Shown here: positions 7,446 through 64,000 of the stretch, in pieces
Numbering within the stretch: the stretch's first letter is position 1
Layout: the number at the start of each line of letters is the position of its first letter
Assembly: GCA_020184695.1 (NCBI GenBank)
Contig: JAANOX010000096.1
Location: 64,882-128,881 of the forward strand
Direction: 5' to 3'
Length of the DNA: 64,000 bases
From: Histomonas meleagridis 2922-C6/04-290x
Taxonomy: Eukaryota > Protista > Parabasalia
The notes under the pieces: model-generated
The model's database searches: none
The model's input: the letters and a program-made list of their open reading frames with translations, nothing else
Told to the model about the DNA's origin: nothing
Translations under genes and position numbers: made by a program

Positions 7446-7903
7446 ATGAGAGAACGTTTATTGTGGCGTTACTTATCAGTTGCCAGAAAAACTGATTTAT
7501 CGGCGGATACTTTCAGAAGGAACACTCAATTTCAGACGAACCTAAGTCAATTTTGTGTTAAATGGCGCCAAAAAATCGATATTGTTTTGATTCACAAATT
7601 TGAGGAAATCGTTTTCATTGTCAAACATGTTAACATTAAAGATATATATTTGTTTAATTTAATATTTATTTTGTTGGTTTCTAATTTCAAAATAATATTT
7701 GGAATTTATTAATTTAACAAAAAACACCGCTTATGTTAGCAAAATCAAGTGGTAAAACTGAAATTGTTAAGCTGATTCTCGAAAAAGAAGGAATAAATTC
7801 GAACCAACAAACTGAAAGTAAAATAAATGAATTTGGTCTACCTTCGAATGAACCACCAAATGCCAAAAAGTCATATAGCTTTGGATTACCTTCTAATAAG
7901 TAA
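7446..7903 (+). CDS. Small ankyrin-motif protein interrupted by one 77-nt spacer (four 17-nt units); 129 aa after removal
   Basis: GAT 7641-43 | unit 7644-60 | AAT | unit 7664-80 | CTA | unit 7684-7700 | GGA | unit 7704-20 | AAA ACA CCG CTT gives KD-N-L-G-KTPLMLAKSSGKTEIVKLILEKEG, open to TAA 7901-03. The N-terminal part and start codon are uncertain. Confidence 0.6.
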
Positions 7904-18682: not shown

Positions 18683-21600
18683 TTATTTTATTATACTTAA
18701 CTTTAATATTTTCCATATATTATTTTAAATCTTTAAAATGTTATAATAAATATCAAATAAATTAAATAAATATTTTTAGCATTAATATCAATTCCTTCTT
18801 GTTCAAGAAGTAATTTAACAATTTCTGTATAACCTTTTTCAGATGCAAACATGAGTGCTGTTTTAAATAATTTAAATAATTTCCAAATATTATTTTGAAA
18901 TAGAAAATTATCAATATAAATATTATCTTTAGCATTAATATCTATTCCTTCTTGTTTAAGAAGTAATTTAACTATTTCTGTGCGACCATTTAAAGATGCA
19001 ATCACAAGTGCTGTTCTAAATATTTTATATCATTTTCAAATATTATTTTGGGATATAAAATTATTGAATTAAATTTTAAGTTAAACAATTAAATATCTTT
19101 AAGATTAACATCAATTCCTTCTTTTTCAAGAAGTAATTTAACGATATCTGTTTTACCATTTTGAGATGCAATTATGAGTGCTGCTTTAATTAATTTAAAT
19201 ATTTTCCACATATTATTTTTAAATATAAAATATTCAAAATAAAATATATCTTTATGATTAACATCAATTCCCTCTTTTCCAAGAAGTAATTTAACAATTT
19301 CTGGATAATTATAATCGGATGCATAAATAAGTGCTGTATCAAATTCTTTAAATAATTTCCAAATATTATTTTGAAATCCAGAATTATTCAAATAAATTTT
19401 AAACAAAACAAATAAATATCTTTAGCATTAATATCAATTCCTTTTTGTTTAAGAAGTAATTTAACTATTTCTGTGTGACCTTCTGAAGATGCTAAAATAA
19501 GTGCTGTATAAAATATATTAAATAATTTTCAAATATTATTTTGAAATCCAGAATTATTCAAATAAATTTTAAACAAAACAAATAAATATCTTTAGCATTA
19601 AAATCAATTCCTTCTTGTTTAAGAAGTAATTTAACTATATCAACATTACCTTTTGAAGATGCCCATATAAGTGCTGTTTGAAATCTTTTAAATAATTTTC
19701 AAATATTATTTTGAAATATCAAATTATTTTTAAAAAATTCATTTTTTGTATTAATATCAATTCCTTCTTGCTCAAGAAGTAATTTAACTATTTCTGTATA
19801 ACCTCCTTCAGATGCAAACATAAGTAATGTTTGAAGAAATTTAAATAAATTCCAAATATTATTTTGAAATATAAAATTATTAAAATAAATTTTAAATTAA
19901 GTAGGTAAATATCTTTTGAATTAATATCAATTCCTTCTTTTTCAAGAAGTAATTTAAATATTTCTATATGCTCATTTTCAGATGCTTTAATAAGTGCTGT
20001 TCTAAATATTTTTTATAATTTCCAACAATTATATTGAAATATTAAATTATTAAAATAATTTATATCTTTAGCATTAATATCAATTCCTTCTTGTTCAAGA
20101 AGTAACTTAACAGTTTCTATATAACCATTTCCAGATGCTATCATAAGTGCTGTCCATAATATTTTAAATAATTTCCAAATATTATTTTAAATCTTTAAAA
20201 TGTTATAATAAATATCAAATAAAACAAATAAATATCTTTAGCATTAATATCAATTCCTTCATGTTCAAGAAGTAATTTAACTATATCAGTATAACCTTTT
20301 TCAGATGCTAAAATAAGTGCTGTCCAAAATATTTTAAGTTATCTCCAAATATTATATTGAAACATTAAATTATTAAAATAAATCCAAAATAGAACAAATA
20401 AATATTTTTAGTATTAATATCAATTTTTCCATCTTTTAAAATAAATTCAACAAGTTCTTCATTTCCTTGTTCTAAAGAAAAGAATAAATGTTTTTTTTGA
20501 AGTTGATTTCCTTTCAAAAATTGTTGGATGAGAAATATATTTCCATTTATAGCTAATTCATATATAATGGAATCATTAATCCTCAATCCTTTTTCTTGTA
20601 AGTAAAATAAAATTTGGTAGTTATGATATTTGACACATTTCCTTCCCAACTTTTCAAATTTTTCAATTTCTATAATTTTATTTTCATAAAGATATTTAAA
20701 GATATCATTACGATGGAATTCAATTGCTGCTTCATATGCACCTTCAAATGATGAATAATTTTGTTCACATAAATGAATGATTTCTAGATTTCCATTTGCA
20801 ACTGCATATTTACCTGTGTTATCTAATTTTGCACCATTCATAAGTAAATATTTAAAACATTTGATTGATCCAAAAAATGCTGCATAATCAATCAATGTAG
20901 CATTGTTTTGATTAATAAATGAATATCTTTCATAAAGTGATGGTTCAATTTTTTGATTAAAATCAAAATATGGTTGTGATGATATAACTTGAAGTTTTTC
21001 TACTTCATCATTTCGAATTATTTTTGCTATTTCATTCGGATTATGTCCTTCTTTAATTAATTTCTTATGAAGTTCCCAATTGTTTTCTGAAAGTTCTTCA
21101 AAATTATCAAAGAATTCATCACCAAATAAACAATTGAAAGTGATACGTCCAGCAATTTTCATAGAAACTTTTTTCTTATATTTTTCAACTTTTCGGATTG
21201 AAGTATGATGCGCAAAAAATAATGAATTTTCAATTTTTAACAAAAAAGGACTTACTAAATTTTGCTCAAGCATTTTTTCAAGAAGATAACATGATTCTTG
21301 GCTATTGAACCATATAAGAAATCGTATAAATATATCAGTAATTTTAAATACATTTTTATGAATTTTTCCTTCTTCATCTTCTAGTAATTGTATAATATTA
21401 AGATAAAATTTAAAGTCCTCCTTGTTTGAAACAAAACGTGCATAAAGAAAATGACAAATAATTAGATTTGATGAGTACATTAAATTTTTATCAAGTATTG
21501 AAATTATTTTATGAATATATGATTCAATGTTGTTGGTTGTTGATCCCATAGTTTGATCATTTGCATAAGGTATTTCAAATATAATCTGTTCAAGAGGTAA

Positions 21601-21693
21601 AATAATTGTATCCATTTTGATAAAATGAGCTGACGGCATATTTGAAAGGAAAACGATTAAAGGGGTCCACCCTGTTTTGAATATGTAAAACAT
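18683..21693 (-). CDS. DUF3447-type ankyrin protein plus 10 further ankyrin repeats interrupted by 11 spacers (40 x 17-nt units); 776 aa after removal (array A)
   Basis: N-terminal ORF has LIDYAAFFGSIKCFKYLLMNGA / AVANGNLEIIHLCEQ. Spacers: 20327-20403, 20157-20233, 20004-20063, 19834-19910, 19681-19740, 19511-19587, 19341-19417, 19188-19247, 19018-19094, 18865-18924, 18695-18771. 3011 - 680 = 2331 nt = 777 codons with no internal stop. Confidence 0.75.
18695..20403 (-). repeat. Tandem ankyrin array, 170-nt and 153-nt units (93 nt contiguous coding + 77- or 60-nt spacer)
   Basis: Direct reading of the repeated ACAGCACTT...GAAGGAATTGATATTAATGCTAAAGAT blocks. Confidence 0.95.
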
Positions 21694-21975
21694 TCAAATG
21701 AACAACTTTTACAATTATTTTACAATTAGATTCTAATTGTAGATTTAACTTTTAGTTTTGTACAAAATGTAAAACAATGTCATAAAACCCACCATAACTT
21801 TTTATTCTAGTTACTTTTATAATAACACGTTTCCTTACTAATTATCTATTAAATGAGCATGCACAATTAAAAATATTTTAGATAATCGTGATATAATTTA
21901 ATTTTTTTTAATGGGAAACGACCGTTTAGAGAACGGGAACCGTTTATTATTCTGCTGTTTTATATAAAAAGTGGA

Positions 21976-23109
21976 ATGCTGAAACAAAGGAATTATTCTT
22001 ATTTCAAGAAGAAAATTAAATCATCTCTTTGGTTGATTATTTATTTCAGCATGGTTTCATTGATTTTTTCTTTATATAGAACCTCACCATTTCCAAATAT
22101 TTTCATAGAAAAATCGAAATTCTCACGTAAAAAATTTTATAAAGATGTACTCAAGTGTATGAATCAGCCTCCTGATGCTCGTTACATAACAGATGCAAAG
22201 TCAAGAAATGAGCAATATCAGATAATTGAAGAATATATCAAAAACAATTATCCCAATGTCAGTGGTACTTGCTATGCATACTATTGCGGTAAGCAACTCG
22301 AAGAACTATGGTATGACGAATTTCATAATAAGCCCATTGAAGATTTTGGTATTTTTGTACCCATATTTGTCAAGTACGTCAATCTTTACTTTGGCCTCCC
22401 CGATCAATATGGCTCGTTTGTTAATGGATTGTTCAAAATTTTAAATCCAAATTTTTTATACATCACGGTCAGTAGTTATTCCGATGGAATCGAGACTGTT
22501 AATAACCTCAAAGTACCAGAAAATGTATTTATAGTGTCTGGCGGTGGCTTAGGCCATGTTCCATTTCATATTTTTTTAAAAGAACAACCAGCACTTAATG
22601 TTTCCAAAGAGCCGAAGTACACCACAGTCTTTATGGGCGACAAAGGACGTCATGATGTCCGTAAAAAGATGATAGACATCTGTAAACAAAAGCTCGGAGA
22701 AAAGTTTTACACCGGATTTAATGATCGGTGGGTCAAAACATATCAAGACACGAAAGTTATATTAACTCCGCGAGGCTATGGACGAAACTCATTTCGTTTT
22801 ACCGAAGTGTTACAGATGAGAATGATACCAATTAACATTTATAGCGATATTCCTTGGGTTCCATATTATGATTCGATAAATTGGAGCGAAATCGCTTTCA
22901 TCATAAAAATAGAACAGCTGAATCAGACATTGGATAAAATAGAAAAAATGAGTTACGAAGAATTGGAAAAAATGAGAAGAAAAATCTTGTTGCTAAGAGA
23001 TACACATTTCACAGTAAAAGGCGCATTAGGTCAATTGGCTAATTTCATGAAATATGGTTTCGAGGGAACTGATTTAAGATGTGGAACTAGAAAATATAAA
23101 AGAACATAA
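21976..23109 (+). CDS. Exostosin-like (GT47) glycosyltransferase
   Basis: N-terminal membrane anchor; LTPRGYGRNSFRFTEVLQMRMIPINI matches the GT47 L.PRG.G..S.R..E.L...CIP motif. Confidence 0.8.
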   Translation: MLKQRNYSYFKKKIKSSLWLIIYFSMVSLIFSLYRTSPFPNIFIEKSKFSRKKFYKDVLKCMNQPPDARYITDAKSRNEQYQIIEEYIKNNYPNVSGTCYAYYCGKQLEELWYDEFHNKPIEDFGIFVPIFVKYVNLYFGLPDQYGSFVNGLFKILNPNFLYITVSSYSDGIETVNNLKVPENVFIVSGGGLGHVPFHIFLKEQPALNVSKEPKYTTVFMGDKGRHDVRKKMIDICKQKLGEKFYTGFNDRWVKTYQDTKVILTPRGYGRNSFRFTEVLQMRMIPINIYSDIPWVPYYDSINWSEIAFIIKIEQLNQTLDKIEKMSYEELEKMRRKILLLRDTHFTVKGALGQLANFMKYGFEGTDLRCGTRKYKRT

Positions 23110-23689
23110 CATTATGTTATAAATATAACCAATAATTTTGTTGTTTATATCTTCAAAGTCAAATTAAGTTAATAAATTTTATATTTCAAAAGAATATTTG
23201 AAAATTATTTATATCATTTTGTAAAGGAAATATGTTAGCATCTATATATGGTCATAATGATTGGTTCGGAACGAGCTGTTCGAAAATTTAACCCTTTACC
23301 AAATTTGTAATGTTGAGTGCAAGATTGCAAATCAAGTGACATAAATAACTTTTTCATTCTATGTTTGGCTATTGAATGCGTATACAAATTTTTGAATGAG
23401 ATGATTTTAAAAAATAAGAATTTTTTGGTTGCTTTATTTTTTTCGTTAATGCAAAATTGAATGGTAGAAATTGTGTAATACACAAAACAATGTTTTTTCT
23501 GTGGCGACCGTTTGGGGTACAATTTTTTCTTTGAAATATCTTTTGAGCAAATTTACCTAATGGGTTAAACAGCATACAACAGAAGTTAAGTGATTTAACA
23601 CAGAAATTAAATCATCGACAACATTACGTTATCAATTTTTTCTTAACGTTAACATTGCTACAAACACCAAGCACAGAAAATTATGATAT

Positions 23690-24370
23690 GGAATAGTTTC
23701 TGACCAGAAGTTGCTGGAGCATTAAAAGGACAATCAAAAATATGTGAAGTAGCTAGTGAATGGATAAAAACGATTACGAGTGATTTCATAAAACGAGGTT
23801 AATTATTAACACCATTTTCACTACATATATCATTTGGAATAACATCTAATTCAAGAAATTTTGTAAGTGATACAATTGATGCTATTGAATGTATAATTAA
23901 CAAATTTGCAGAAAATAATACCCTGAAGACCTCGGCCATTTTTGTATAATGTGCTTCAAGGCTACTGATTCTAATCCTACACGTATTTCGTAGTGCAAAA
24001 ATAGATTTCCGATGACAGAAATTTGTTGAATCTTCAACTTGGTATATGGTAATACATTAAATTAACTCTAATAAAAAGACAAATTGCCAAATTAAAGGCG
24101 AAGGCCATACATAAATGTATATCAATGCTGCATAGAAAGTTACTAAATGTTTCGCACTCAACGAAGAGAAGCTTTTACATGAAGACAATAAGAACTTAAG
24201 GCGTTAAAATAATAAAACAGATGAAACGCAAGGTTTTGCTAATATTTATATCGAATTAGATGATCTAAGTGAAAATGTACAATTAATAAGGAAATAACCT
24301 CAGAATCTAGAGGAAGGAGGACTCGAATTCGATAAAAGGGCTATCACAAGGGAAATTGATTATCTATCTG
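23690..24370 (+). mobile_element. Degraded DNA-transposase-like relic (hAT-like)
   Basis: Stop- and frameshift-riddled frames ...SDTIDAIECIINKF...ATDSNPT...MTEIC*IFNLVYGN resemble hAT motifs (I.EVL..F, TDNA.N, C..H.LNL). No terminal repeats identified. Confidence 0.35.
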
Positions 24371-25075
24371 ATCAGATAGATTAAACATAAGTTTGTGAAA
24401 TTAATTTCCCCAAAAATAAACAAGTGGAAAATTTGCAATAAAAAATAAAAATAAAAGTTTTTAAACTATAGCTCGCCTTAAGGCTCACAAAAAAATATTT
24501 GGGCTTAAAGAAAAGTGACATTTTGGGGTGCCCTAGAGAAGTGATCACTTTTAATGTTATTTTTTGCCAAAATATAAAAATATCTCACGAAACCCTTGTT
24601 TTATTTGAACCAAATTATAAGAATCTCATTAATTTCATCTATAGGTCTTTTATATCTATATATTATCTTGTTCATCAAATTTTGTTACAATATGAACCTT
24701 GAAAACATGATTTTGTCCCCAAATGAAAACTTTATTTCTCTTATTATTTGAGATATTTATATTTTGTCTATAAAAATTTTATTTTTAGAAAAAATTTGAT
24801 TATTCTATCAGATAAATTTTTGAAATATTTTTTGATGTGGAGATATAAAGAATATTCAAACTAAAAATTGTGTGTAATCTTTAAACAAATTTAAAAAACC
24901 TATGTAAATAAAGCCAAGCCATTCTGATGGTTATAACATAACATGTGTGCCGCTTTCTGATTGGTGTATTTTTTATCGTTGTTGGCAAAATTTTATTCAA
25001 TTGGCATAAATTAATTAATCGAAAGGTAACACAATTCAAGAATTTAATGAATTTGCAAATAATACTTCAAGTATT

Positions 25076-26368
25076 ATGAAAAAACAATCTCGTTATACAC
25101 ATATGACTGAAAAATACATTTGATAGGAATATTTAATGTTTTAATGTAAATTTTGAAATTATTATCTTTAATTTAGGAAAGCACTTGAGCTTGCAGAAGC
25201 TTATGGTAACACCAATGTTATTAATATACTTCTTGAAGGAACAAATATTAATGGTAAAGATATTACTTTATTTCAATCAAAATTTGATTTAGTTATTTGA
25301 TAAATATTCAAAATATTTGGAATTTTTTTAATATATTTGTACCATTACTTATATGGGCATGCATGGAAAATAAAGTCAAAGTGTTTAAAGCTCTTCTTGA
25401 ACAAAAAAGAATAGATGTTAATATTAGAAATGTTTTATTATCTATACCAATGTTTGTATAAGTAATTGAATTTTTTATTATTAATCCCAAAGATATTTAT
25501 TTGTACTATTTAATTTTTATTTCAATAATTTTGTATTTTAAAACAATATTTGGAAATTATTTAGAATATTTAATACAGTACTTATGTATGCATCTGGAAA
25601 TAATAAAATAAATATAGTTAAATTACTTCTTGAACACGAAGGAATTGATATTAATGCTAAAAATATTTATTTGTTTTATTCGAAATTCATATTAATAATT
25701 TTATATTTTAAAATAATATTTGGAAATTATGTAAATTATTTAAAACAGCACTTATGTGTGCATCTGAAAAAGGTTATACAGAAACAGTTAAATTACTTCT
25801 TAAACAAGAAGGAATTGATATTAATGCTAAAGATATTTATTTGTTTTATTTAAAATTTATTTTAATAATTTTATATTTCAAAATAATATTCGAAAATGAT
25901 ATAAAATATTTAGAACAGCACTTATTGAAGCATCTTATAATGGTCATACAGAAACAGTTAAATTACTTCTTGAACAAGAAGGAATTGATATTAATGATAA
26001 AGATATTTATTTGTTTTGTTTAAAATTTATTTGAATAATTCTGGATTTCAAAATAATATTTGGAAATTATTTAAATCATTTAAAACAGCACTTATGGCAG
26101 CATCTAGATGTGGTTACATAGAAATAGTTAAATTACTTCTTGAACAAGAAGGAATTGATATTAATTTTACATCTATTCATTTGTTTTATTTAAAATTTAT
26201 TTTAATAATTTGATATTTCAAAATAATATATGGAAATTATTTATATTATTTGATTCAGCACTCGCCAATTTGTATTGGGAAGACGCCATGAAAATTTTTA
26301 AATTGATTGCTGAGCGCGCAGAAAAAAGGAACACACAAACGGGAATTAAGCGATACAACGAACAGTAA
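25076..26368 (+). CDS. Ankyrin-repeat protein interrupted by 30 x 17-nt units; 260 aa after removal (array B)
   Basis: Spacers 25115-25174, 25262-25338, 25432-25488 (truncated), 25495-25571, 25665-25741, 25835-25911, 26005-26081, 26175-26251. 1293 - 510 = 783 nt = 261 codons ending at TAA 26366-68 after a unique tail (DSALANLYWEDAMK...YNEQ). Start codon uncertain. Confidence 0.65.
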
Positions 26369-26422
26369 CAGGAATAAACGACACATCAACATTTTTATGT
26401 ATATATCTTAGCATTTAATAAA

Positions 26423-48560: not shown

Positions 48561-50621
48561 ATGGGAAGCAATCAAAGTACTCAAAACCAGAAAGGACTTC
48601 AAAAATTGAAACAACTTGAGGAAGTTATATTTAATTTAAATTCAAAGAATCTAAATGAATCAATTGTATCATCCTTTACCTATTTCGATCAAGAATATCC
48701 ATATTCATTCTATCTCATTATTTGTCGACTTTTATATTCATATTTTATTTCTAAAGGTTGTGGTGATATATGTTTAGAATATATTAAAAAGCTTGAAATA
48801 AAAGAAAAAGAAATATTTAATAACAATTTCAGAATTGATAATAAAACAAACAATAAAGTAATCCGAATATTTGCAAAATTTCTCTTATCTATTGACACAC
48901 AAGAATCGAATTATCTTCTTGAAAAAATGATAGAAGAACATTTGATTGATCCAAAAATTTATAAATTGATTTATAAACAAAAAAGGCCATATTTTGCTCA
49001 TTTAATTTCAATCAAAGAAATTTGGTGGTATAATCAATATAGTAAATTTTATAATAACTTTCATGCAAATTATGAAGAACTTTCAAAGAATAATTGGAAA
49101 CTTCATAAGCAATTAATTAAAGAAGGACATAATCCAAATGAAATTGCAAAAATCATTCGAAAAGATGAAATCGAAAAACTTCAAGAAATATCATCACAAA
49201 CAAATTTAGATTTTAATCAAAAAATTAGGCCATCACTTTATGAAAGATGTTCATTTATTAATGAAGAAAATGTTTCATTAATTGATTATGCAGCATTTTT
49301 TGGATCAGTTAAATGTTTTAAATATTTACTTATGAATAATGCTAATGTACATAACACAGGTAAATATGCAGTTGCAGGTGGAAATCTTGAAATTATTCAT
49401 TTGTGTGAACAGAATCATTCATCATTTGAAAATGCATTTAAAACAGCAATTATGTTTCATCGAAATGATATCTTTAAATATCTTTATGACAATAATTTCG
49501 ATAACTATTATTTGCCTCCATTAGCATGGGAATGTGTTTCATTTGATAACTATAAAATTCTTTCATATATGGAAAGAAAAGAAGGGATGGAATTTGATGA
49601 ATCTTTCATTAAAGATTCACTAAAAACTGATAATTTGTTCCTTATACAATATCTTCTTGAAAAGAATCCAGTCACATTAAATATTTTCAACCCCAAATTA
49701 TTTTCTAATTTTTGTAATATTGAACTCTTTAAATATCTTAATAAAAATGGACATATAATATATAAAAATATAAATTAGTTTTATTTAATGTTTTTTATAT
49801 TGATTGTATATTTTAATATATTAATTGGATTTTATTCAAATTGTTTAAAACATCACTTATGAATGCATCTGATATTGGAAATATTTCATTAGTTAAAATA
49901 CTTTTAAAACAAAAAGATTTTAATATTAATGCTAAAGATTTTTTTATAATTTCATTTAAAATTTATTTTAACAATTTGATATTAATAAATAATATTTGGA
50001 AATATTTTAAATAATAATGGACAGCACTTATGTATGCATCACGATATTCTAACCCAAAAATAGTTAAATTGCTTCTTGAACAAGAAGGAATTGATATTAA
50101 TGCTAAAAATATTTATTTATTATGGCTAATGTTTATTATAAAATATTTAATGTTTTGAAATAATATTTGGAAATTATTGAAATTATTTGATACAGCACTT
50201 ATGCTTGCTTCCGAGTATGGATTTATTAAAAGAGCTAAATTACTTTTAGATAAAGGAATTGATATTAATGTTAAAAACCTTTTTTTGTTGAATATAAAAC
50301 TTATTATAATAACTTGATATTTAAAAATAATAATTGGTAGTTATCTATATCATTTAAAACAGCTCTTAATCTAGCAACTGAAAATGGTCATAAGGAAATA
50401 GTTAAATTGCTTCTTGAACAAAAAAGGATAAATACAAACATTCAAGATGTTAGTATAATAAAATCAATGCTTATATCTTTGATTTAATCTTTTAAAATAT
50501 TATATGGAATTAATTAAAATAATATAATACAGCATTTACATCTGATTCTAATGTAAAGAAAATTGTAAAAGTTACAGGGTTAGCATTTCTTGTATTTGCT
50601 ATAGTCAAGAATATTAAATGA
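48561..50621 (+). CDS. DUF3447-type ankyrin protein plus 4 ankyrin repeats and a hydrophobic tail, interrupted by 5 spacers (18 x 17 nt + 2 x 18 nt); 572 aa after removal (array C)
   Basis: Spacers 49770-49846, 49940-50017, 50111-50188, 50279-50355, 50449-50525. 2061 - 342 = 1719 nt = 573 codons ending at TGA 50619-21. Confidence 0.75.
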
Positions 50622-57884: not shown

Positions 57885-58925
57885 TCATTTTGAAGGGCTA
57901 TCTGCAAGCGTTGTTTGGATTGCGGCGACTTGTTTCTCCAATTTCTTTGTTGCAGTCTCCAATGTATTTAATGCCTTGAAGTTACATTCGAGAATTTTTG
58001 TAATTGATGACAATGAATTCTTATCAATTGACATGTGGTTAACATTTCTACTCTGATTTGCTCTTTTGGCTTTGTTTTTAAGGTCTTCTATCTTTGATTT
58101 CAATCTTGGTTCATCCATCTGTCTTTTTTTGAGTAACTGATTCATCTCTTCTTCAGTTTGGTTTAACTCTGGATATTGGTGGAGAACGTCCTCCATCTCA
58201 ACAACTTCCATCAAGAGCTGGTTGATAGTATTTGAGTTCTGTCGAAGTTTTTCAAATGATCCTTGTAATTCTGTTGAGTAAAAAGAAGACATTTCTCGAA
58301 GTTTTGTTTGGACAAGCTTCATCCTTTCTGTAAGGGCATCACCAATTGCTTTTTGAGTTTCGTATCGATTGTGTAATTCTGTAAACCCATATACTGGATG
58401 TGGCGCTAAATGTTCTGGATCAGGAGCTTCACGGCAGATGTTGGTCCAATCTTGCTGCATGATATTTTCTGGACATGTGGGATAATTTTGACCTGCTTTG
58501 TTATAGAATATAAAACAAAATTTGTAAGAAGGAGAATCCTTAGTATATGAATTAAGTAATTTCCAGATGCGCTTGAAGAGATCATCGTCTTGAATTACTG
58601 ATGCATTTTGGGTTTTGGTTTGTGTGCCAGTAAAACTACCCCAACTAGTTTTTTGTTGTGAACCAAACGCTCCTTTGTTTGTACCAAATCCACCTGTATT
58701 ACTTGTACCAAATCCACCTATATTACTTGTACCAAATCCACCTGTATTACTTGTACCAAATCCACCTGTATTACTTGTACCAAATGCACCTGTACTACTT
58801 GTACCAAATCCACCTGTATTACTTGTACCAAACCCACCTGTATTACTTGTACCAAATCCACCTGTATTACTTGTACCAAATCCACCTGTATTACTTGTAC
58901 CAAATCCACTTGTGCTACCAAACAT
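57885..58925 (-). CDS. FG nucleoporin, Nup54/Nup57-like
   Basis: N-terminal GFGTSNTG repeats, then FCFIFYN...DWTNICREAPDPEHLAPHPVYGFTELHNRYETQ and coiled coil as in Nup54. Confidence 0.75.
   Translation of the reverse strand: MFGSTSGFGTSNTGGFGTSNTGGFGTSNTGGFGTSNTGGFGTSSTGAFGTSNTGGFGTSNTGGFGTSNIGGFGTSNTGGFGTNKGAFGSQQKTSWGSFTGTQTKTQNASVIQDDDLFKRIWKLLNSYTKDSPSYKFCFIFYNKAGQNYPTCPENIMQQDWTNICREAPDPEHLAPHPVYGFTELHNRYETQKAIGDALTERMKLVQTKLREMSSFYSTELQGSFEKLRQNSNTINQLLMEVVEMEDVLHQYPELNQTEEEMNQLLKKRQMDEPRLKSKIEDLKNKAKRANQSRNVNHMSIDKNSLSSITKILECNFKALNTLETATKKLEKQVAAIQTTLADSPSK
58680..58915 (-). repeat. 24-bp coding tandem repeat (GFGTSNTG), about 9-10 copies
   Basis: ACCAAATCCACCTGTATTACTTGT repeated on the + strand. 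Confidence 0.95.
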
Positions 58926-60484: not shown

Positions 60485-62524
60485 ATGAAAGCCAGCCTCT
60501 TCATTCTGTCACTCGTGATGACATTAACATCCAGTGCAGGCGTCCTGACACCCGAGATCCTTTGGTCAATGGGTCGTCTTGGAGATGTAGCAGTTTCACC
60601 CGATAATACAAAAATTGCATATGCTATTAGTAATTATAGCGTCGCAGAGAACAGTGGTCGTAGCTCTATCTACGTTATGAATGCTGATGGTACAGGTAAT
60701 GTACAAATTACTGATGGAACATATTCAGAAAGCACACCTAGATGGATTAAACAAGGAACTAAGATTGCCTATCTTTCCAGCGAAAGTGGTCAATCACAAG
60801 TATGGGAAATGAATCCAGATGGTACAGAACGTAAGCAACTTTCTCATCATGAAGGAGATATTGAAGGATATGCTTTTTCACCAGACGGCACCAAACTTCT
60901 TTACATCTCTCAAGTTAAGACAGTTCAAACCACCGTTGATAAATATCCAGATCTTCCTTTATCCAGTGGAAGAATTATCACAGATCTTGCGTATAAGCAT
61001 TGGGATGAATGGGTTACCACAGCTCCACATCCATTCATTGGTGATTTTGATGGCAACACCGTCACCAATGTTATTGATATAATGGAAGGTGAACCTTATG
61101 AAAGTCCAAACAAGCCATGGGGTGGCATTGAAATGCTTGGCTGGAGTCCAGCGTCTGACAAAGTTGCCTATACCAGCCGTAAGAAGACAGGTATGGCCTA
61201 TGCCTTTTCAACCAATTCCGACATTTACATTTATGACATTGCCACAAAGAAGACCACAGACATCACAACTGACAACAAAGGCTATGACACCAATCCACAA
61301 TATTCACCCGACGGCAAGTTCATTGCATGGCTCAGCATGGAACGCGACGGTTATGAAGCCGATCAAAACCGCCTCATGATCATGAACATTGAAACCAATG
61401 AAAAGCGCTTTGTCAGTAAGTCTTTTGAGTCCAATGTTGATCAATTTGTATGGAGTTCTGATAGCAGCAAGATTTATTTTGTTGGCGTATGGCATGGAGA
61501 AAGTCATATTTATATCATTGATCTCAAAGACAATGATAAACTTACCCAATTAACAGATGGGATGTATGATTATATATCCGTATCATTATTTGGTGACAAG
61601 TTACTTGCCAAACGTCAATCGATGAGTATGGCAGATGAATTTTATTCAGTAGAAACTACTCGTACCACCGAAGCATCTGCCAAAGTCACACAATTATCAT
61701 TCATTAACAAACATATCTATGATTCTTTAACCTTTGGTAAAGTCGAAGGCAAATGGATGACGACTACAGACAACAAGCAAATGTTAGTCTGGGTAATATA
61801 TCCACCAAACTTTGATCCCAAACTTAAATATCCGACATTACTCTTCTGTGAAGGCGGTCCACAAACGCCAGTTAGTCAAGCGTGGAGTTATCGCTGGAAT
61901 TACCAAATCATGGCCGCCAACAATTACATTGTTGTTGCACCAAATCGCCGCGGATTACCGGGCTTTGGAATGGAATGGTTAGAAGAGATCAGTGGCGATT
62001 ACGGAGGCCAATGCATGAGAGATTTATTAACAGCAATCGACACAATGGCGAAAGAGTCATATGTCGATTCGGATAAATTAGGTTGCGTTGGCGCAAGCTT
62101 CGGTGGTTACTCAGTGTATTGGTTAGCAGGGCATCACGAGAAACGATTCAAGGCATTCATCGCACACGACGGAATATTCAACGTGGAAATGCAATATTTG
62201 GAAACTGAAGAGAAATGGTTCGTGAATTGGGACTTAGGAGGTGCGTATTGGGAAAAGAATAATACAATTGCACAAAGATCTTACGAAAACTCGCCGCATA
62301 AATTCGTTGATAAATGGGATACGCCAATCCTTTGTATACATGGCGAAAAAGATTACCGAATATTGGCAAACCACGCGATGGCCGCATTCGACGCAGCAAT
62401 AATTAGAGGAGTTCCAGCAGAGCTACTCATATTCCCTGATGAAAATCATTGGGTGTTGAAGCCACAAAACGGAATGCTTTGGCAAAGAACATTCTTTGAA
62501 TGGTTGGATAAATGGCTCAAGTAA
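60485..62524 (+). CDS. S9-family serine peptidase (DPP5-like), bacterial type
   Basis: Signal peptide, PD40-type propeller, GASFGG nucleophile, HGEKDYR Asp, DENHW His. Confidence 0.95.
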   Translation: MKASLFILSLVMTLTSSAGVLTPEILWSMGRLGDVAVSPDNTKIAYAISNYSVAENSGRSSIYVMNADGTGNVQITDGTYSESTPRWIKQGTKIAYLSSESGQSQVWEMNPDGTERKQLSHHEGDIEGYAFSPDGTKLLYISQVKTVQTTVDKYPDLPLSSGRIITDLAYKHWDEWVTTAPHPFIGDFDGNTVTNVIDIMEGEPYESPNKPWGGIEMLGWSPASDKVAYTSRKKTGMAYAFSTNSDIYIYDIATKKTTDITTDNKGYDTNPQYSPDGKFIAWLSMERDGYEADQNRLMIMNIETNEKRFVSKSFESNVDQFVWSSDSSKIYFVGVWHGESHIYIIDLKDNDKLTQLTDGMYDYISVSLFGDKLLAKRQSMSMADEFYSVETTRTTEASAKVTQLSFINKHIYDSLTFGKVEGKWMTTTDNKQMLVWVIYPPNFDPKLKYPTLLFCEGGPQTPVSQAWSYRWNYQIMAANNYIVVAPNRRGLPGFGMEWLEEISGDYGGQCMRDLLTAIDTMAKESYVDSDKLGCVGASFGGYSVYWLAGHHEKRFKAFIAHDGIFNVEMQYLETEEKWFVNWDLGGAYWEKNNTIAQRSYENSPHKFVDKWDTPILCIHGEKDYRILANHAMAAFDAAIIRGVPAELLIFPDENHWVLKPQNGMLWQRTFFEWLDKWLK

Positions 62525-63331: not shown

Positions 63332-64000
63332 TTATTTATATTTTTCTAGTAAATTTATGATTTCACTATTTCCCTTTTTTAATGCATGTGTAAAAGTTGT
63401 TTCATTTAATCATAATAAATTCCAAATTATATTTTATGATTTTAATTATTTAAGAGCAAATAAAAATGAAATATTTTAATATCACATATATTTATATCAA
63501 GATTATCTTTTTTTAATAGTAATTTAATAACTTTTATTCTTTCATTTTCAATGGCTTTTATAAGTGCTGTTTTAATAAATATAAATAAATTCCAAATATT
63601 ATATCGAAATCCAAAATAATTTATATAAATATTATTTGAAAAATATATAAATTTTTAGCATTAATATCAATTCCTTCTTGTTCAAGAAGTAATTTAACTA
63701 TTTTTGTGTGACCATTTTCAGATGCATTAATAAGTGCTGTATCAAATTCTTTAAATAATTTCCAAATATTATTTTGAAATATAAAATTATTAAAATAAAT
63801 TTTAAATAAAACAGATAAATATCTTTAGCATTAATATCAATTCCTTCTTGTTCAAGAAGTAATTTAACTATTTTTGTGTGACCATTTTCAGATGCAAATA
63901 TAAGTGCTGTTTGAAATAATTTAAATAATTTCCAAATATTATTTTGAAATATAAAATTATTAAAATAAATTTTAAATAAAACAGATAAATATCTTTAGCA
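63332..64000 (-). CDS. 3' part of an ankyrin-repeat gene interrupted by 4 spacers (16 x 17-nt units); 5'-partial (array D)
   Basis: Spacers 63914-63990, 63744-63820, 63574-63650, 63404-63480. After removal: AKD-KYG-QTAL...KD-KYG-DTAL...KN-NWG-KTAL...ICD-LKG-ETTFTHALKKGNSEIINLLEKYK*, stop at 63332-34. Confidence 0.75.

Follow-up and report, generated by a model that had tools for sequence, protein, structure and literature searches.

Ankyrin-repeat genes of Histomonas meleagridis are interrupted between single codons by AT-rich 17-nucleotide units that are missing from RNA

In ankyrin genes of the poultry parasite Histomonas meleagridis, every repeat loop is interrupted by AT-rich inserts of 17 nt placed between single codons. 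Genomic DNA carries these units, whereas cDNA and RNA contigs lack them and keep the single codons. At the junction singled out by an earlier note, four 17-nt units lie at 25665–25741 of the window (the whole 64-kb stretch of DNA analysed), with the codons GAA, TAT and GGA between them. In order along the forward strand these are unit 1, ATTTATTTGTTTTATTC (25665–25681), whose boundary cannot slide; GAA (Glu, 25682–25684); unit 2, ATTCATATTAATAATTT (25685–25701); TAT (Tyr, 25702–25704), at a hypervariable loop position; unit 3, ATTTTAAAATAATATTT (25705–25721); GGA (25722–25724), the conserved Gly of the ankyrin D-x-x-G-x-T loop; and unit 4, AATTATGTAAATTATTT (25725–25741), followed by AAA ACA GCA CTT. 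A 31-codon ankyrin exon on the same strand (K-TALMCASEKGY...INAKD, 25742–25834) then matches the Pfam Ank profile from position 4 to 32 of 33 (E = 1.8e-08), and the repeat period of 170 nt consists of 102 coding nucleotides plus 68. The sequence confirms the 17-mers that the earlier note described here, and its four position-specific consensuses correspond to the majority bases in an alignment of 17 junctions. We interpret the units as minimal, intron-defined micro-introns of spliceosomal type, with relaxed ends (R-T-T-T ... A-T-T-T) and a fixed geometry, a reading to which we assign a probability of about 0.5.

The reported junction belongs to gene B (25076–26368, plus strand), which encodes a small ankyrin protein of seven repeats, carries about 30 units, forms an open reading frame only after their removal and is represented in cDNA (X9 record 29) and RNA (X3 record 14, X5 record 23). 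Gene A (18720–21693, minus strand) has a 442-aa DUF3447/ankyrin N-terminal ORF joined to 11 ankyrin repeats through 38 units, each of 17 nt; at four of its junctions, in repeats of 153 nt, unit 1 is precisely missing. Removal of the units in silico yields uninterrupted ankyrin ORFs of 11 repeats for gene A and 7 for gene B. Gene C (48561–50621, plus strand, 3' end uncertain) combines a DUF3447 N-terminal ORF with 4–5 diverged repeats and contains two 18-nt variants (49943–49960 and 50131–50148), which are in frame and stop-free if left in; no public protein of 223–709 aa matched it above 55% identity. The called-gene list of locus L003, considered as a sign that gene C is unannotated, lacks an evident GTPase ORF and was set aside as incomplete. 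Three repeats with the same kind of units form gene D (63446–64000, minus strand), cut by the window end. A solitary junction in a one-repeat ankyrin gene (7644–7720, plus strand) has four units at 7644–7660, 7664–7680, 7684–7700 and 7704–7720, and in a decayed fragment (23160–23224, plus strand) three unit-like 17-mers adjoin a remnant ankyrin exon. Outside the window, no such array was found downstream of another H. meleagridis DUF3447 gene (locus L004).

Evidence at the RNA level comes from assembled contigs (2013 cDNA and 2023 RNA), in which the letters between aligned pieces at gene B are known by number only. The cDNA record X9-29 (353 nt) matches gene B without a mismatch over 313 nt, its unique 5' end included, in four pieces (25057–25118, 25175–25262, 25339–25431 and 25551–25620) separated by 5, 8 and 17 letters. 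The corresponding genomic gaps of 56, 76 and 119 nt give net losses of 51, 68 and 102 nt, or 3, 4 and 6 times 17, and the letters kept (6, 9 and 18, one flank letter being shared) equal the number predicted from the single codons. All three junctions lie on the plus strand. The first, J1 (25118–25174), comprises units at 25118–25134, 25138–25154 and 25158–25174 with the codons AAT and GAA, and the cDNA lacks 51 nt; J2 (25262–25338) has four units with AAA, GAT and GGA, of which the cDNA omits 68 nt and keeps 9; and the first six units of J3 (25432–25551), the third placed ambiguously at 25469–25485 or 25472–25488, account for 102 nt absent and 18 kept. The lengths of X3-14 (195 nt = 87 + 9 + 93 + 6) and X5-23 (216 nt = 109 + 8 + 93 + 6) also fit the 17-nt model, and gene A shows RNA joints from 20003 to 20059 (net 51) and from 20153 to 20243 (net 68). 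The cDNA was also checked for a single long intron or for GT-AG sites elsewhere, either of which the earlier note would have taken as contrary; it retains the single codons, and what it lacks comes in multiples of 17 nt.

Comparison of RNA with DNA runs points the same way. Joints of 55–89 nt are listed for RNA runs only, with in-frame letters between them such as GAA GAA GGA, and none was listed for the DNA run X1, some joints of which were not counted. Sampled words are present at 0.37–0.54 in RNA runs against 0.86–0.89 in DNA runs, where an exon-only expectation is 0.40. X1 contigs run collinear with the window across J1–J3 (24499–25563), again with some joints not counted, and the long-read assemblies of both strains contain the units. 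Many RNA joints have short sides (19–26 nt) and clearly come from paralogues.

Removal is not all-or-none within a transcript. Unit 25158–25174 is retained beside a fully processed J2, contigs break exactly between 25468 and 25469, and a unit at 25555–25571 is retained downstream of six removed units; the mixtures of removed and retained units differ between RNA libraries. Because such partly processed molecules exist, the units are shown to leave the RNA one by one, independently. The unit at 25555–25571 is the seventh of J3 (AATTATTTAGAATATTT, plus strand), kept in cDNA and RNA contigs (the X9-29 piece 25551–25620, X3-16 and X5-24). It is well formed and apparently not removed, and the transcripts that keep it are partly processed or defective.

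To describe the grammar of the units we used 92 parsed units (69 unique) from the five ankyrin loci of the window, obtained with a PWM/codon Viterbi parser, with placement within 25417–25485 set from the cDNA piece ends. The fixed length that the earlier note had proposed is borne out, with 17 nt in 92 of 94 units and 18 nt in the two gene C variants. The first base is A in 88%, G in 8%, T in 3% and C in 1%; position 2 is T (75%) or A (23%); T occupies position 3 in 96%, position 4 in 89% and positions 15–17 in 88–92%; and A is found at position 11 in 73% and at position 14 in 87%. The weak end motifs reported earlier resolve into R-T-T-T at positions 1–4 and A-T-T-T at 14–17. The final dinucleotide is TT in 77 of the 92 and never AG, as had been noted, and no unit offers GT..AG in any register open to sliding. 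None ends in AC, and the starts are ATTT or AATT, not the U12-type ATATCC. Boundaries that cannot slide, another feature noted before, occur at 34 of 92 junctions, including the quoted GGA-AATTATTTAAAGAATTT-GAT (19357–19341 and 63760–63744, minus strand). Every window unit lies in phase 0, at a codon boundary, as stated previously, and in 97% of cases the middle base of the flanking codon is a purine.

Two claims of the earlier note hold in part. That the units lack GT is correct for the window, where 5 of 92 start with it, but not genome-wide: in L002, another H. meleagridis array, 13 of 26 model-parsed units begin with GT and 15 of 26 have G at position 1. The proposal of a ruler agrees with the almost invariant length, but sequence is constrained too. 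Since R-T-T-T, A-T-T-T and A11 stand at constant distances from one another and a middle purine is common in the flanking codons, the recognition rule is motifs plus spacing, like that of other minimal introns, and not length alone.

No stop codon directly follows any of the 92 units, a lack that exceeds chance (P of about 6e-4 given the triplet composition of the units themselves, or about 2e-3 with unique units only). RNAalifold on 17 junctions returned 0 pairs and an energy of 0, and scanning the window with Rfam models and for tRNA genes gave no matches and no snRNA gene. A free-position parser allowing skips of 15–20 nt could not separate 17 from other lengths, stop avoidance alone being too permissive, and window-wide joining of ORF pairs by deletion of L bases gave equal counts at every L = 2 mod 3, which is uninformative outside the ankyrin genes.

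The codons between the units follow ankyrin coding logic. The 31-aa exons match Pfam Ank (PF00023; E from 2e-8 to 2e-7) over profile positions 3 or 4 to 32 of 33, and the loop codons supply positions 33, 1, 2 and 3 (x-x-G-x), with one 17-nt unit before each; at the reported junction GAA falls on position 33. The GGA micro-exon corresponds to position 2, the 33-residue profile having G at 2 and T at 4. Identity per column is 0.44 and 0.40 for the hypervariable second and fourth loop codons and 0.86 for the third, which is Gly; for the units it is 0.73–0.84. An intron-free homologue has four residues between D and T, and paralogue mRNAs keep four loop codons. We read phase 0 and the four-in-a-row layout as history, that is, as duplication of modules of one unit plus one codon and of whole repeats within one family. 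Because every unit occupies a homologous position in an ankyrin loop, duplication explains phase 0 with no link to translation, and the coupling to reading frame suggested earlier is unneeded, common descent being sufficient.

How might such units be removed? Under the preferred spliceosomal reading, a spliceosome would act in intron-definition mode at minimal size, as in Mikrocytos (16–17 nt) and Stentor (15–16 nt), with RUUU as a degenerate 5' site, the A at position 11 or 14 as candidate branch, and the 3' cut placed by distance instead of by AG; the last of these would account for the stricter constraint on length than on sequence. The purine at position 1 speaks for a spliceosome. Among features of U2-type introns, removal from pre-mRNA with exact exon ligation is seen (contigs lack 3, 4 and 6 times 17 nt), and neither a 5' GU nor a 3' AG marks the window units; as in Stentor and Mikrocytos, only one or two lengths occur, all below 20 nt. 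Tiny fixed lengths are a known trait of minimal spliceosomal introns (PMC10245619, PMC9505925, PMC12316389). Against the spliceosome, the terminal pair is A-U, not G-G or A-C, and AG ends are lacking throughout (0/92); the Trichomonas-type GT-AG and CTAAC branch motif are both missing from the units; and units are so far found in one gene family only, as a dedicated system would also give. With A14 as the branch, the tail would measure 3 nt, less than in any described intron (5 nt in Stentor). We know of no spliceosome that takes AG-less, A-U-ended introns as a rule.

The rival that survives best, though we consider it rather unlikely, is non-spliceosomal excision and ligation, in which each 17-mer would be cut at both ends by an endonuclease, with or without a ruler made of protein or RNP, and the codons would be rejoined by an RtcB- or Trl1-type ligase. 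Such a system would resemble tRNA or HAC1/XBP1 splicing but follow a new recognition rule. It accommodates the A...U termini without GT-AG in any register, the almost invariant length with two AUUU-like motifs at fixed spacing, the confinement to one gene family so far and the independent removal of units. Known enzymes of this kind, however, read RNA structure (bulge-helix-bulge motifs, or paired stem-loops with G/C-containing loops); no conserved structure was found at the 17 junctions, which disfavours structure-guided endonucleases, and G or C is almost absent from the units. Moreover, the purine at position 1 and the frequent GT in L002 resemble a decayed 5' splice site. On the absence of structure and the frequent G1 and GT starts in L002, we lean towards the spliceosome over an endonuclease and ligase. 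A bolder form, which we put forward tentatively, is that this parabasalid possesses a dedicated non-spliceosomal excision-ligation machine that recognises AU-rich segments through two short motifs and a 17-nt measure, rejoins the single codons and possibly gates or diversifies binding loops across a large ankyrin family. Were this true, retention of a unit would shift the frame and the loops would act as sets of on/off switches.

Deletion of blocks by another RNA route, whether guide-RNA deletion editing or polymerase skipping of U-rich stretches, seems improbable. The U-rich units, weak rU:dA hybrids and loose sequence rules would suit it, as would the presence of units in DNA and their absence from RNA, but partly processed RNAs that keep some units imply post-transcriptional, unit-wise removal and not polymerase skipping, and the flanking codons are too variable for a small set of guide RNAs. 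Deletion of 17-nt blocks from nuclear mRNA has no known precedent.

It is very unlikely that the cDNA was copied from unit-free DNA, be it retrocopies, another allele or programmed DNA excision in some cells. The uncounted X1 joints mean that absence of such DNA is not absolute, yet X1 contigs are collinear over 24499–25563 with no 55–89-nt skip listed, both strains' long-read assemblies carry the units, and library-specific mixtures of removed and retained units fit processing intermediates. Still harder to sustain is the proposal that these are decaying pseudogene arrays whose grammar stems from recent duplication and whose RNA joints come from paralogues or from template switching by reverse transcriptase. 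The short-sided paralogous joints, the two 18-nt variants of gene C and the retained unit 25555–25571, which would truncate gene B, are in its favour; against it, X9-29 matches gene B over its full 313 aligned nucleotides up to the unique 5' end, 34 boundaries offer no microhomology for template switching, and stops are absent from 92 loop codons. Which of these codons vary and which are conserved also follows the ankyrin pattern, with the units more conserved than the variable codons, unlike neutral decay.

One long non-canonical intron of 77–80 nt per repeat has almost nothing left to recommend it: removal of 80, 81 or 63 nt from ...GAT to ACA... would also preserve the frame, but the 6, 9 and 18 letters that the cDNA keeps at J1, J2 and J3 align to neither flank and refute it, paralogue mRNAs have four loop codons, and the Ank profile requires 3–4 extra residues including Gly. 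Translational bypass, the ribosome hopping that the earlier note had listed among its candidates and that phase 0 and a short, constant length would suit, is refuted for processed molecules, as the RNA itself lacks the units and no unit's last triplet equals the preceding codon (0/92), in agreement with the earlier observation that the matched take-off and landing of T4 gene 60 are lacking; its probability is practically nil.

A literature search returned no paper describing 17-nt units. With a length at the lower size limit, no AG end and usually no GU start, they would form a large class of nuclear intervening sequences not seen before, and serial single-codon exons would likewise be without precedent. 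If spliceosomal, they would offer a natural experiment in which the 3' cut is set by distance, not sequence, and position 1 is a non-G purine; if not, they would represent a new RNA-processing pathway. The published H. meleagridis annotation has at most one intron per gene (PMC8529796) and cannot represent unit-bearing genes, so that a large ankyrin family of this poultry pathogen probably appears in truncated form, or not at all, in protein sets and in proteome searches. In related protists, genes of this kind will escape standard gene finders and spliced aligners.

Among known systems, tRNA/BHB introns and the IRE1-dependent introns of HAC1/XBP1 (26 nt in XBP1, handled by endonuclease and ligase) are likewise short and removed without GT-AG, but depend on defined helices, bulges and loop motifs, none of which is conserved at unit junctions. 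The bypassed inserts of T4 gene 60 and Magnusiomyces mitochondria (byps) are also short non-coding stretches within ORFs, yet they stay in the mRNA between matched codons, whereas the units are removed from RNA and show no such match. Ciliate IES resemble the units as many short AT-rich inserts that precisely interrupt coding sequence, but they are lost from somatic DNA and mostly TA-bounded; here the DNA keeps the inserts and the RNA loses them, and absence from expressed DNA was not found, units being carried by X1 contigs (some joints not counted) and two assemblies. Euglenid nonconventional introns and the non-GT-AG introns of the appendicularians Fritillaria and Oikopleura are precisely removed without GT-AG; they are longer and variable in length, unlike the fixed 17 nt here, and the end-to-end base pairing of euglenid introns has no counterpart in the RNAalifold results. 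Three-nucleotide micro-exons exist in animals and plants (PMC8831610, PMC7935315). These too are single-codon exons kept in frame, but they are isolated between long GT-AG introns and require special exon-definition factors, while those of H. meleagridis are serial with 17-nt units on both sides.

Within Parabasalia, the type B short introns of Trichomonas vaginalis measure 23–25 nt, run GT...AG with a (T)CTAAC branch motif and number about 24 per genome, with at most one per gene (PMC12316389). The units share their T-richness and very short length, and a few type B introns lie in ankyrin-repeat genes, but the units lack both motifs, are 6–8 nt shorter and occur by the dozens per gene. Nucleomorph introns of Bigelowiella measure 18–21 nt. 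Those of Mikrocytos mackini are 16–17 nt (PMC10245619) and those of Stentor coeruleus 15–16 nt (PMC9505925). With these minimal introns the units have in common removal at the RNA level, very short AU-rich sequence, a length held within one nucleotide, recognition across the intron and a conserved A that lies a few bases before the 3' end. Minimal introns, in contrast, start with GU, end with AG and occur in all phases and many kinds of genes, whereas the units mostly start with A, never end in AG, keep to phase 0 and to ankyrin genes so far, and stand three to seven in series with 3-nt exons between them.

The plus-strand junction at 25665-25741 consists of four 17-mers with the codons GAA, TAT and GGA between them; it is flanked by ...GCT AAA AAT (5') and AAA ACA GCA CTT (3') and sits within a tandem array of 170-nt period. 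BLAST with one repeat, together with a profile search of the window, located unit-bearing arrays at 18708-20472 (minus strand), 25221-26251, 49763-50521 and 63576-64000 (minus strand), a solitary junction at 7644-7720 and a decayed fragment at 23160-23224, and about 120 units were examined in total. The decayed fragment lies directly downstream of an unrelated gene and holds three unit-like 17-mers with intervening codons, then a remnant ankyrin exon terminating in a stop; it looks like a dead member of the ankyrin family. The window has 19-38% G+C; its ORFs are long and intron-free, as usual in a parabasalid, and include BEACH proteins, small GTPases, cyclophilin and DUF3447/ankyrin genes. 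The H. meleagridis genome (two strains, 43 Mb, 28.7% G+C) is reported to have few introns, with no gene carrying more than one (PMC8529796), and the 17-nt units are undescribed in the full-text literature searched. In the highest-G+C part of the window (37-38%), a 679-aa ORF at 60485-62524 with an N-terminal signal-like segment resembles, judged from its translation alone, a bacterial-type S9 enzyme (prolyl oligopeptidase/dipeptidyl peptidase), and is possibly a lateral gene transfer. At 57885-58925 an FG-nucleoporin-like protein carries about ten GFGTSNTG repeats, whose other strand creates a spurious 131-aa ORF.

We tallied the grammar over 92 units (69 unique). Position 1 is A in 88%, G in 8%, T in 3% and C in 1%, position 2 is T (75%) or A (23%), and T3 (96%), T4 (89%), A11 (73%), A14 (87%) and T15-17 (88-92%) follow. 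Units open with AT (60), AA (19) or GT (5) and close with TT in 77 cases and AG in none, nor does any of the 92 read GT..AG in a slide-permitted register. This sequence pattern is fairly summarised as R-T-T-T ... (A11) ... A-T-T-T, with the length fixed at 17 nt. The earlier note had proposed four position-specific consensuses, which a majority consensus of 17 aligned junctions reproduced; it was also right that no unit in the window ends in AG, that many junctions cannot slide (34/92) and that the last triplet does not match the preceding codon (identical in 0/92). A rule of no GT describes the window, with five GT starts, and fails genome-wide: in the predicted model parse of a more diverged array at another H. 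meleagridis locus (L002), 15 of 26 units start with G and 13 with GT, A14 and the T-rich end being retained, and AG closes one of the 26. At that locus a DUF3447 gene is separated from a diverged ankyrin array by a mariner/Tc1-like transposase ORF (L002:5300-6500). A metagenome scaffold (L001, ENA sample SAMEA6814352) shows the same layout in a DUF3447/ankyrin gene (2217-2373), so H. meleagridis or a close relative is present in that sample. The claimed conservation of length is borne out by 92 of 94 units and broken by two 18-nt variants in gene C (49943-49960 and 50131-50148). If kept, each would give six stop-free in-frame codons (FFIISF, VYYKIF), and the predicted frame is intact whether they are kept or removed; a 17-nt unit may have become coding sequence through the insertion of one base, leaving the gene unbroken.

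Units are missing from RNA contigs. Sampled words of 25150-26400 were present at 0.86-0.89 in public DNA runs and 0.37-0.54 in RNA runs of the same organism, 0.40 being expected in RNA if exons of at least 31 nt alone survive. Contigs assembled from three RNA runs, which constitute the RNA evidence, and from one DNA run were aligned to 19950-25949. A 353-nt contig from 2013 cDNA (X9-29) matches gene B with zero mismatches in the pieces 25057-25118, 25175-25262, 25339-25431 and 25551-25620, between which it has 5, 8 and 17 letters vs 56, 76 and 119 genomic nt, a net loss of 51, 68 and 102, or 3, 4 and 6 x 17. The letters kept (6, 9 and 18, including one flank letter shared by chance) agree by count with the predicted AAT GAA at the first junction (J1), AAA GAT GGA at the second (J2) and six codons at the third (J3). 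The same arithmetic holds for X3-14 (195 = 87 + 9 + 93 + 6), from a separate study, and for X5-23 (216 = 109 + 8 + 93 + 6), from the same study as X3-14. The joint 20003>20059, at a three-unit junction, loses a net 51 and 20153>20243 a net 68; joint letters, where spelled, are in-frame paralogue loop codons such as GAA GAA GGA. Joints of 55-89 nt were listed in RNA runs only: the DNA contigs (X1) are collinear with the window (24499-25563) and had none among the joints counted, some being uncounted. RNA-run depth was zero in intergenic bins, so DNA carry-over is small.

Some molecules are partly processed. Contigs from each of the three RNA runs (X9-29, X3-16 and X5-24) still carry unit 25555-25571, the seventh at J3 and a good match to the consensus (AATTATTTAGAATATTT), with its upstream neighbours removed; in X9-29 the six units ahead of it are gone. 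Unit 25158-25174 is kept in X5-23 beside a fully processed J2, and the first base of both X3-15 and X5-24 is 25469, right at the edge of unit 25452-25468, with later units kept. These varied mixtures indicate that units leave singly and in no strict order. Unit 25555-25571 may be defective, truncating the gene B product, which would end 19 codons later were it never excised. DNA-level excision or retrocopies are unlikely given collinear DNA and varied intermediates. Reverse-transcriptase template switching is excluded by the many units removed without microhomology and the concordance of three libraries, and one long intron per repeat, which the earlier note had set against its own reading, by interior letters kept in RNA and losses in multiples of 17. 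Ribosome hopping, one of its candidates, fails because the units are lacking from the RNA contigs themselves.

A two-state parser (codon vs 17-nt unit) returned uninterrupted ORFs for all four unit-bearing ankyrin genes; locus-specific RNA support is confined to gene B, and the other parses are predictions. Gene B (25076-26368) has 7 repeats and about 30 units. Gene A (18720-21693, minus strand) would encode a DUF3447/ankyrin head of 442 aa and 11 ankyrin repeats, with 38 units, and putative ORFs are likewise restored in genes C (48561-50621) and D (63446-64000, minus strand, cut at the window end); no public protein of 223-709 aa exceeded 55% identity to gene C. The single codons between units are truly coding, as four lines of evidence argue. 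First, no stop occurs among the 92 codons after units, vs 7.8% expected from the units' triplet composition (P ~6e-4, or ~2e-3 with unique units only). Second, no columns of the alignment vary more than codons 2 and 4 (pairwise identity 0.44 and 0.40), codon 3 is GGA or GGT with few exceptions (0.86), and the identity of the units is 0.73-0.84; this profile is the ankyrin D-x-x-G-x-T pattern. Third, the 31-codon exons match Pfam Ank (E 2e-8 to 2e-7) from profile position 3 or 4 to position 32, out of 33, and the single codons supply exactly the absent positions 33, 1, 2 (Gly) and 3. Lastly, D and T are separated by four residues in an intron-free homologue (P0021). The middle base is a purine in 89 of the 92 codons, which may be a recognition feature or merely loop chemistry.

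Every unit lies at the homologous ankyrin-repeat loop, including that of J1 ahead of the first repeat, and units 1 and 2 are related with a 20-nt period. We infer from these sequences that modules of unit plus codon, and whole repeats, were duplicated, which would account for phase 0 as well as for the serial arrangement. At four gene A junctions unit 1 is absent to the base with its codon kept, giving 153-nt repeats; speculatively, this clean loss is what recombination with a partly processed transcript might leave behind. The codons there fused to the exon (minus strand, 20063-20061, 19740-19738, 19247-19245 and 18924-18922) are ATA, with middle T, in two of four cases, vs 97% middle purine after units.

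We give a probability of about one half to removal by the spliceosome, the units being minimal introns. Such introns have a fixed length since one active site has to accommodate their 5' site, branch and 3' site together. The 'ruler' of the earlier note would then take spliceosomal form, the distance from the branch, not AG, placing the 3' cut, so that AG would be dispensable and length the constraint. Against this stand the total absence of AG, the A...U terminal pair, the missing trichomonad CTAAC motif and the very short tail expected from branching at A14. A novel endonuclease-ligase system seems rather improbable: RNAalifold found no conserved base pairs in 17 junctions, which weighs against helix- or bulge-reading enzymes of the tRNA endonuclease or IRE1 type. 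A different route of RNA-level deletion is a more distant prospect still. Splicing is favoured by what the units share with minimal spliceosomal introns, namely a purine as first base (with GT starts frequent elsewhere in the genome), a U-rich body and a conserved A close to the 3' end. In Mikrocytos, 217 of 224 introns measure 16 nt and the remainder 17 nt (PMC10245619); those of Stentor measure 15-16 nt, position 10 being the branch A and the tail 5 nt long (PMC9505925); the minimum in Trichomonas is 23 nt (PMC12316389).
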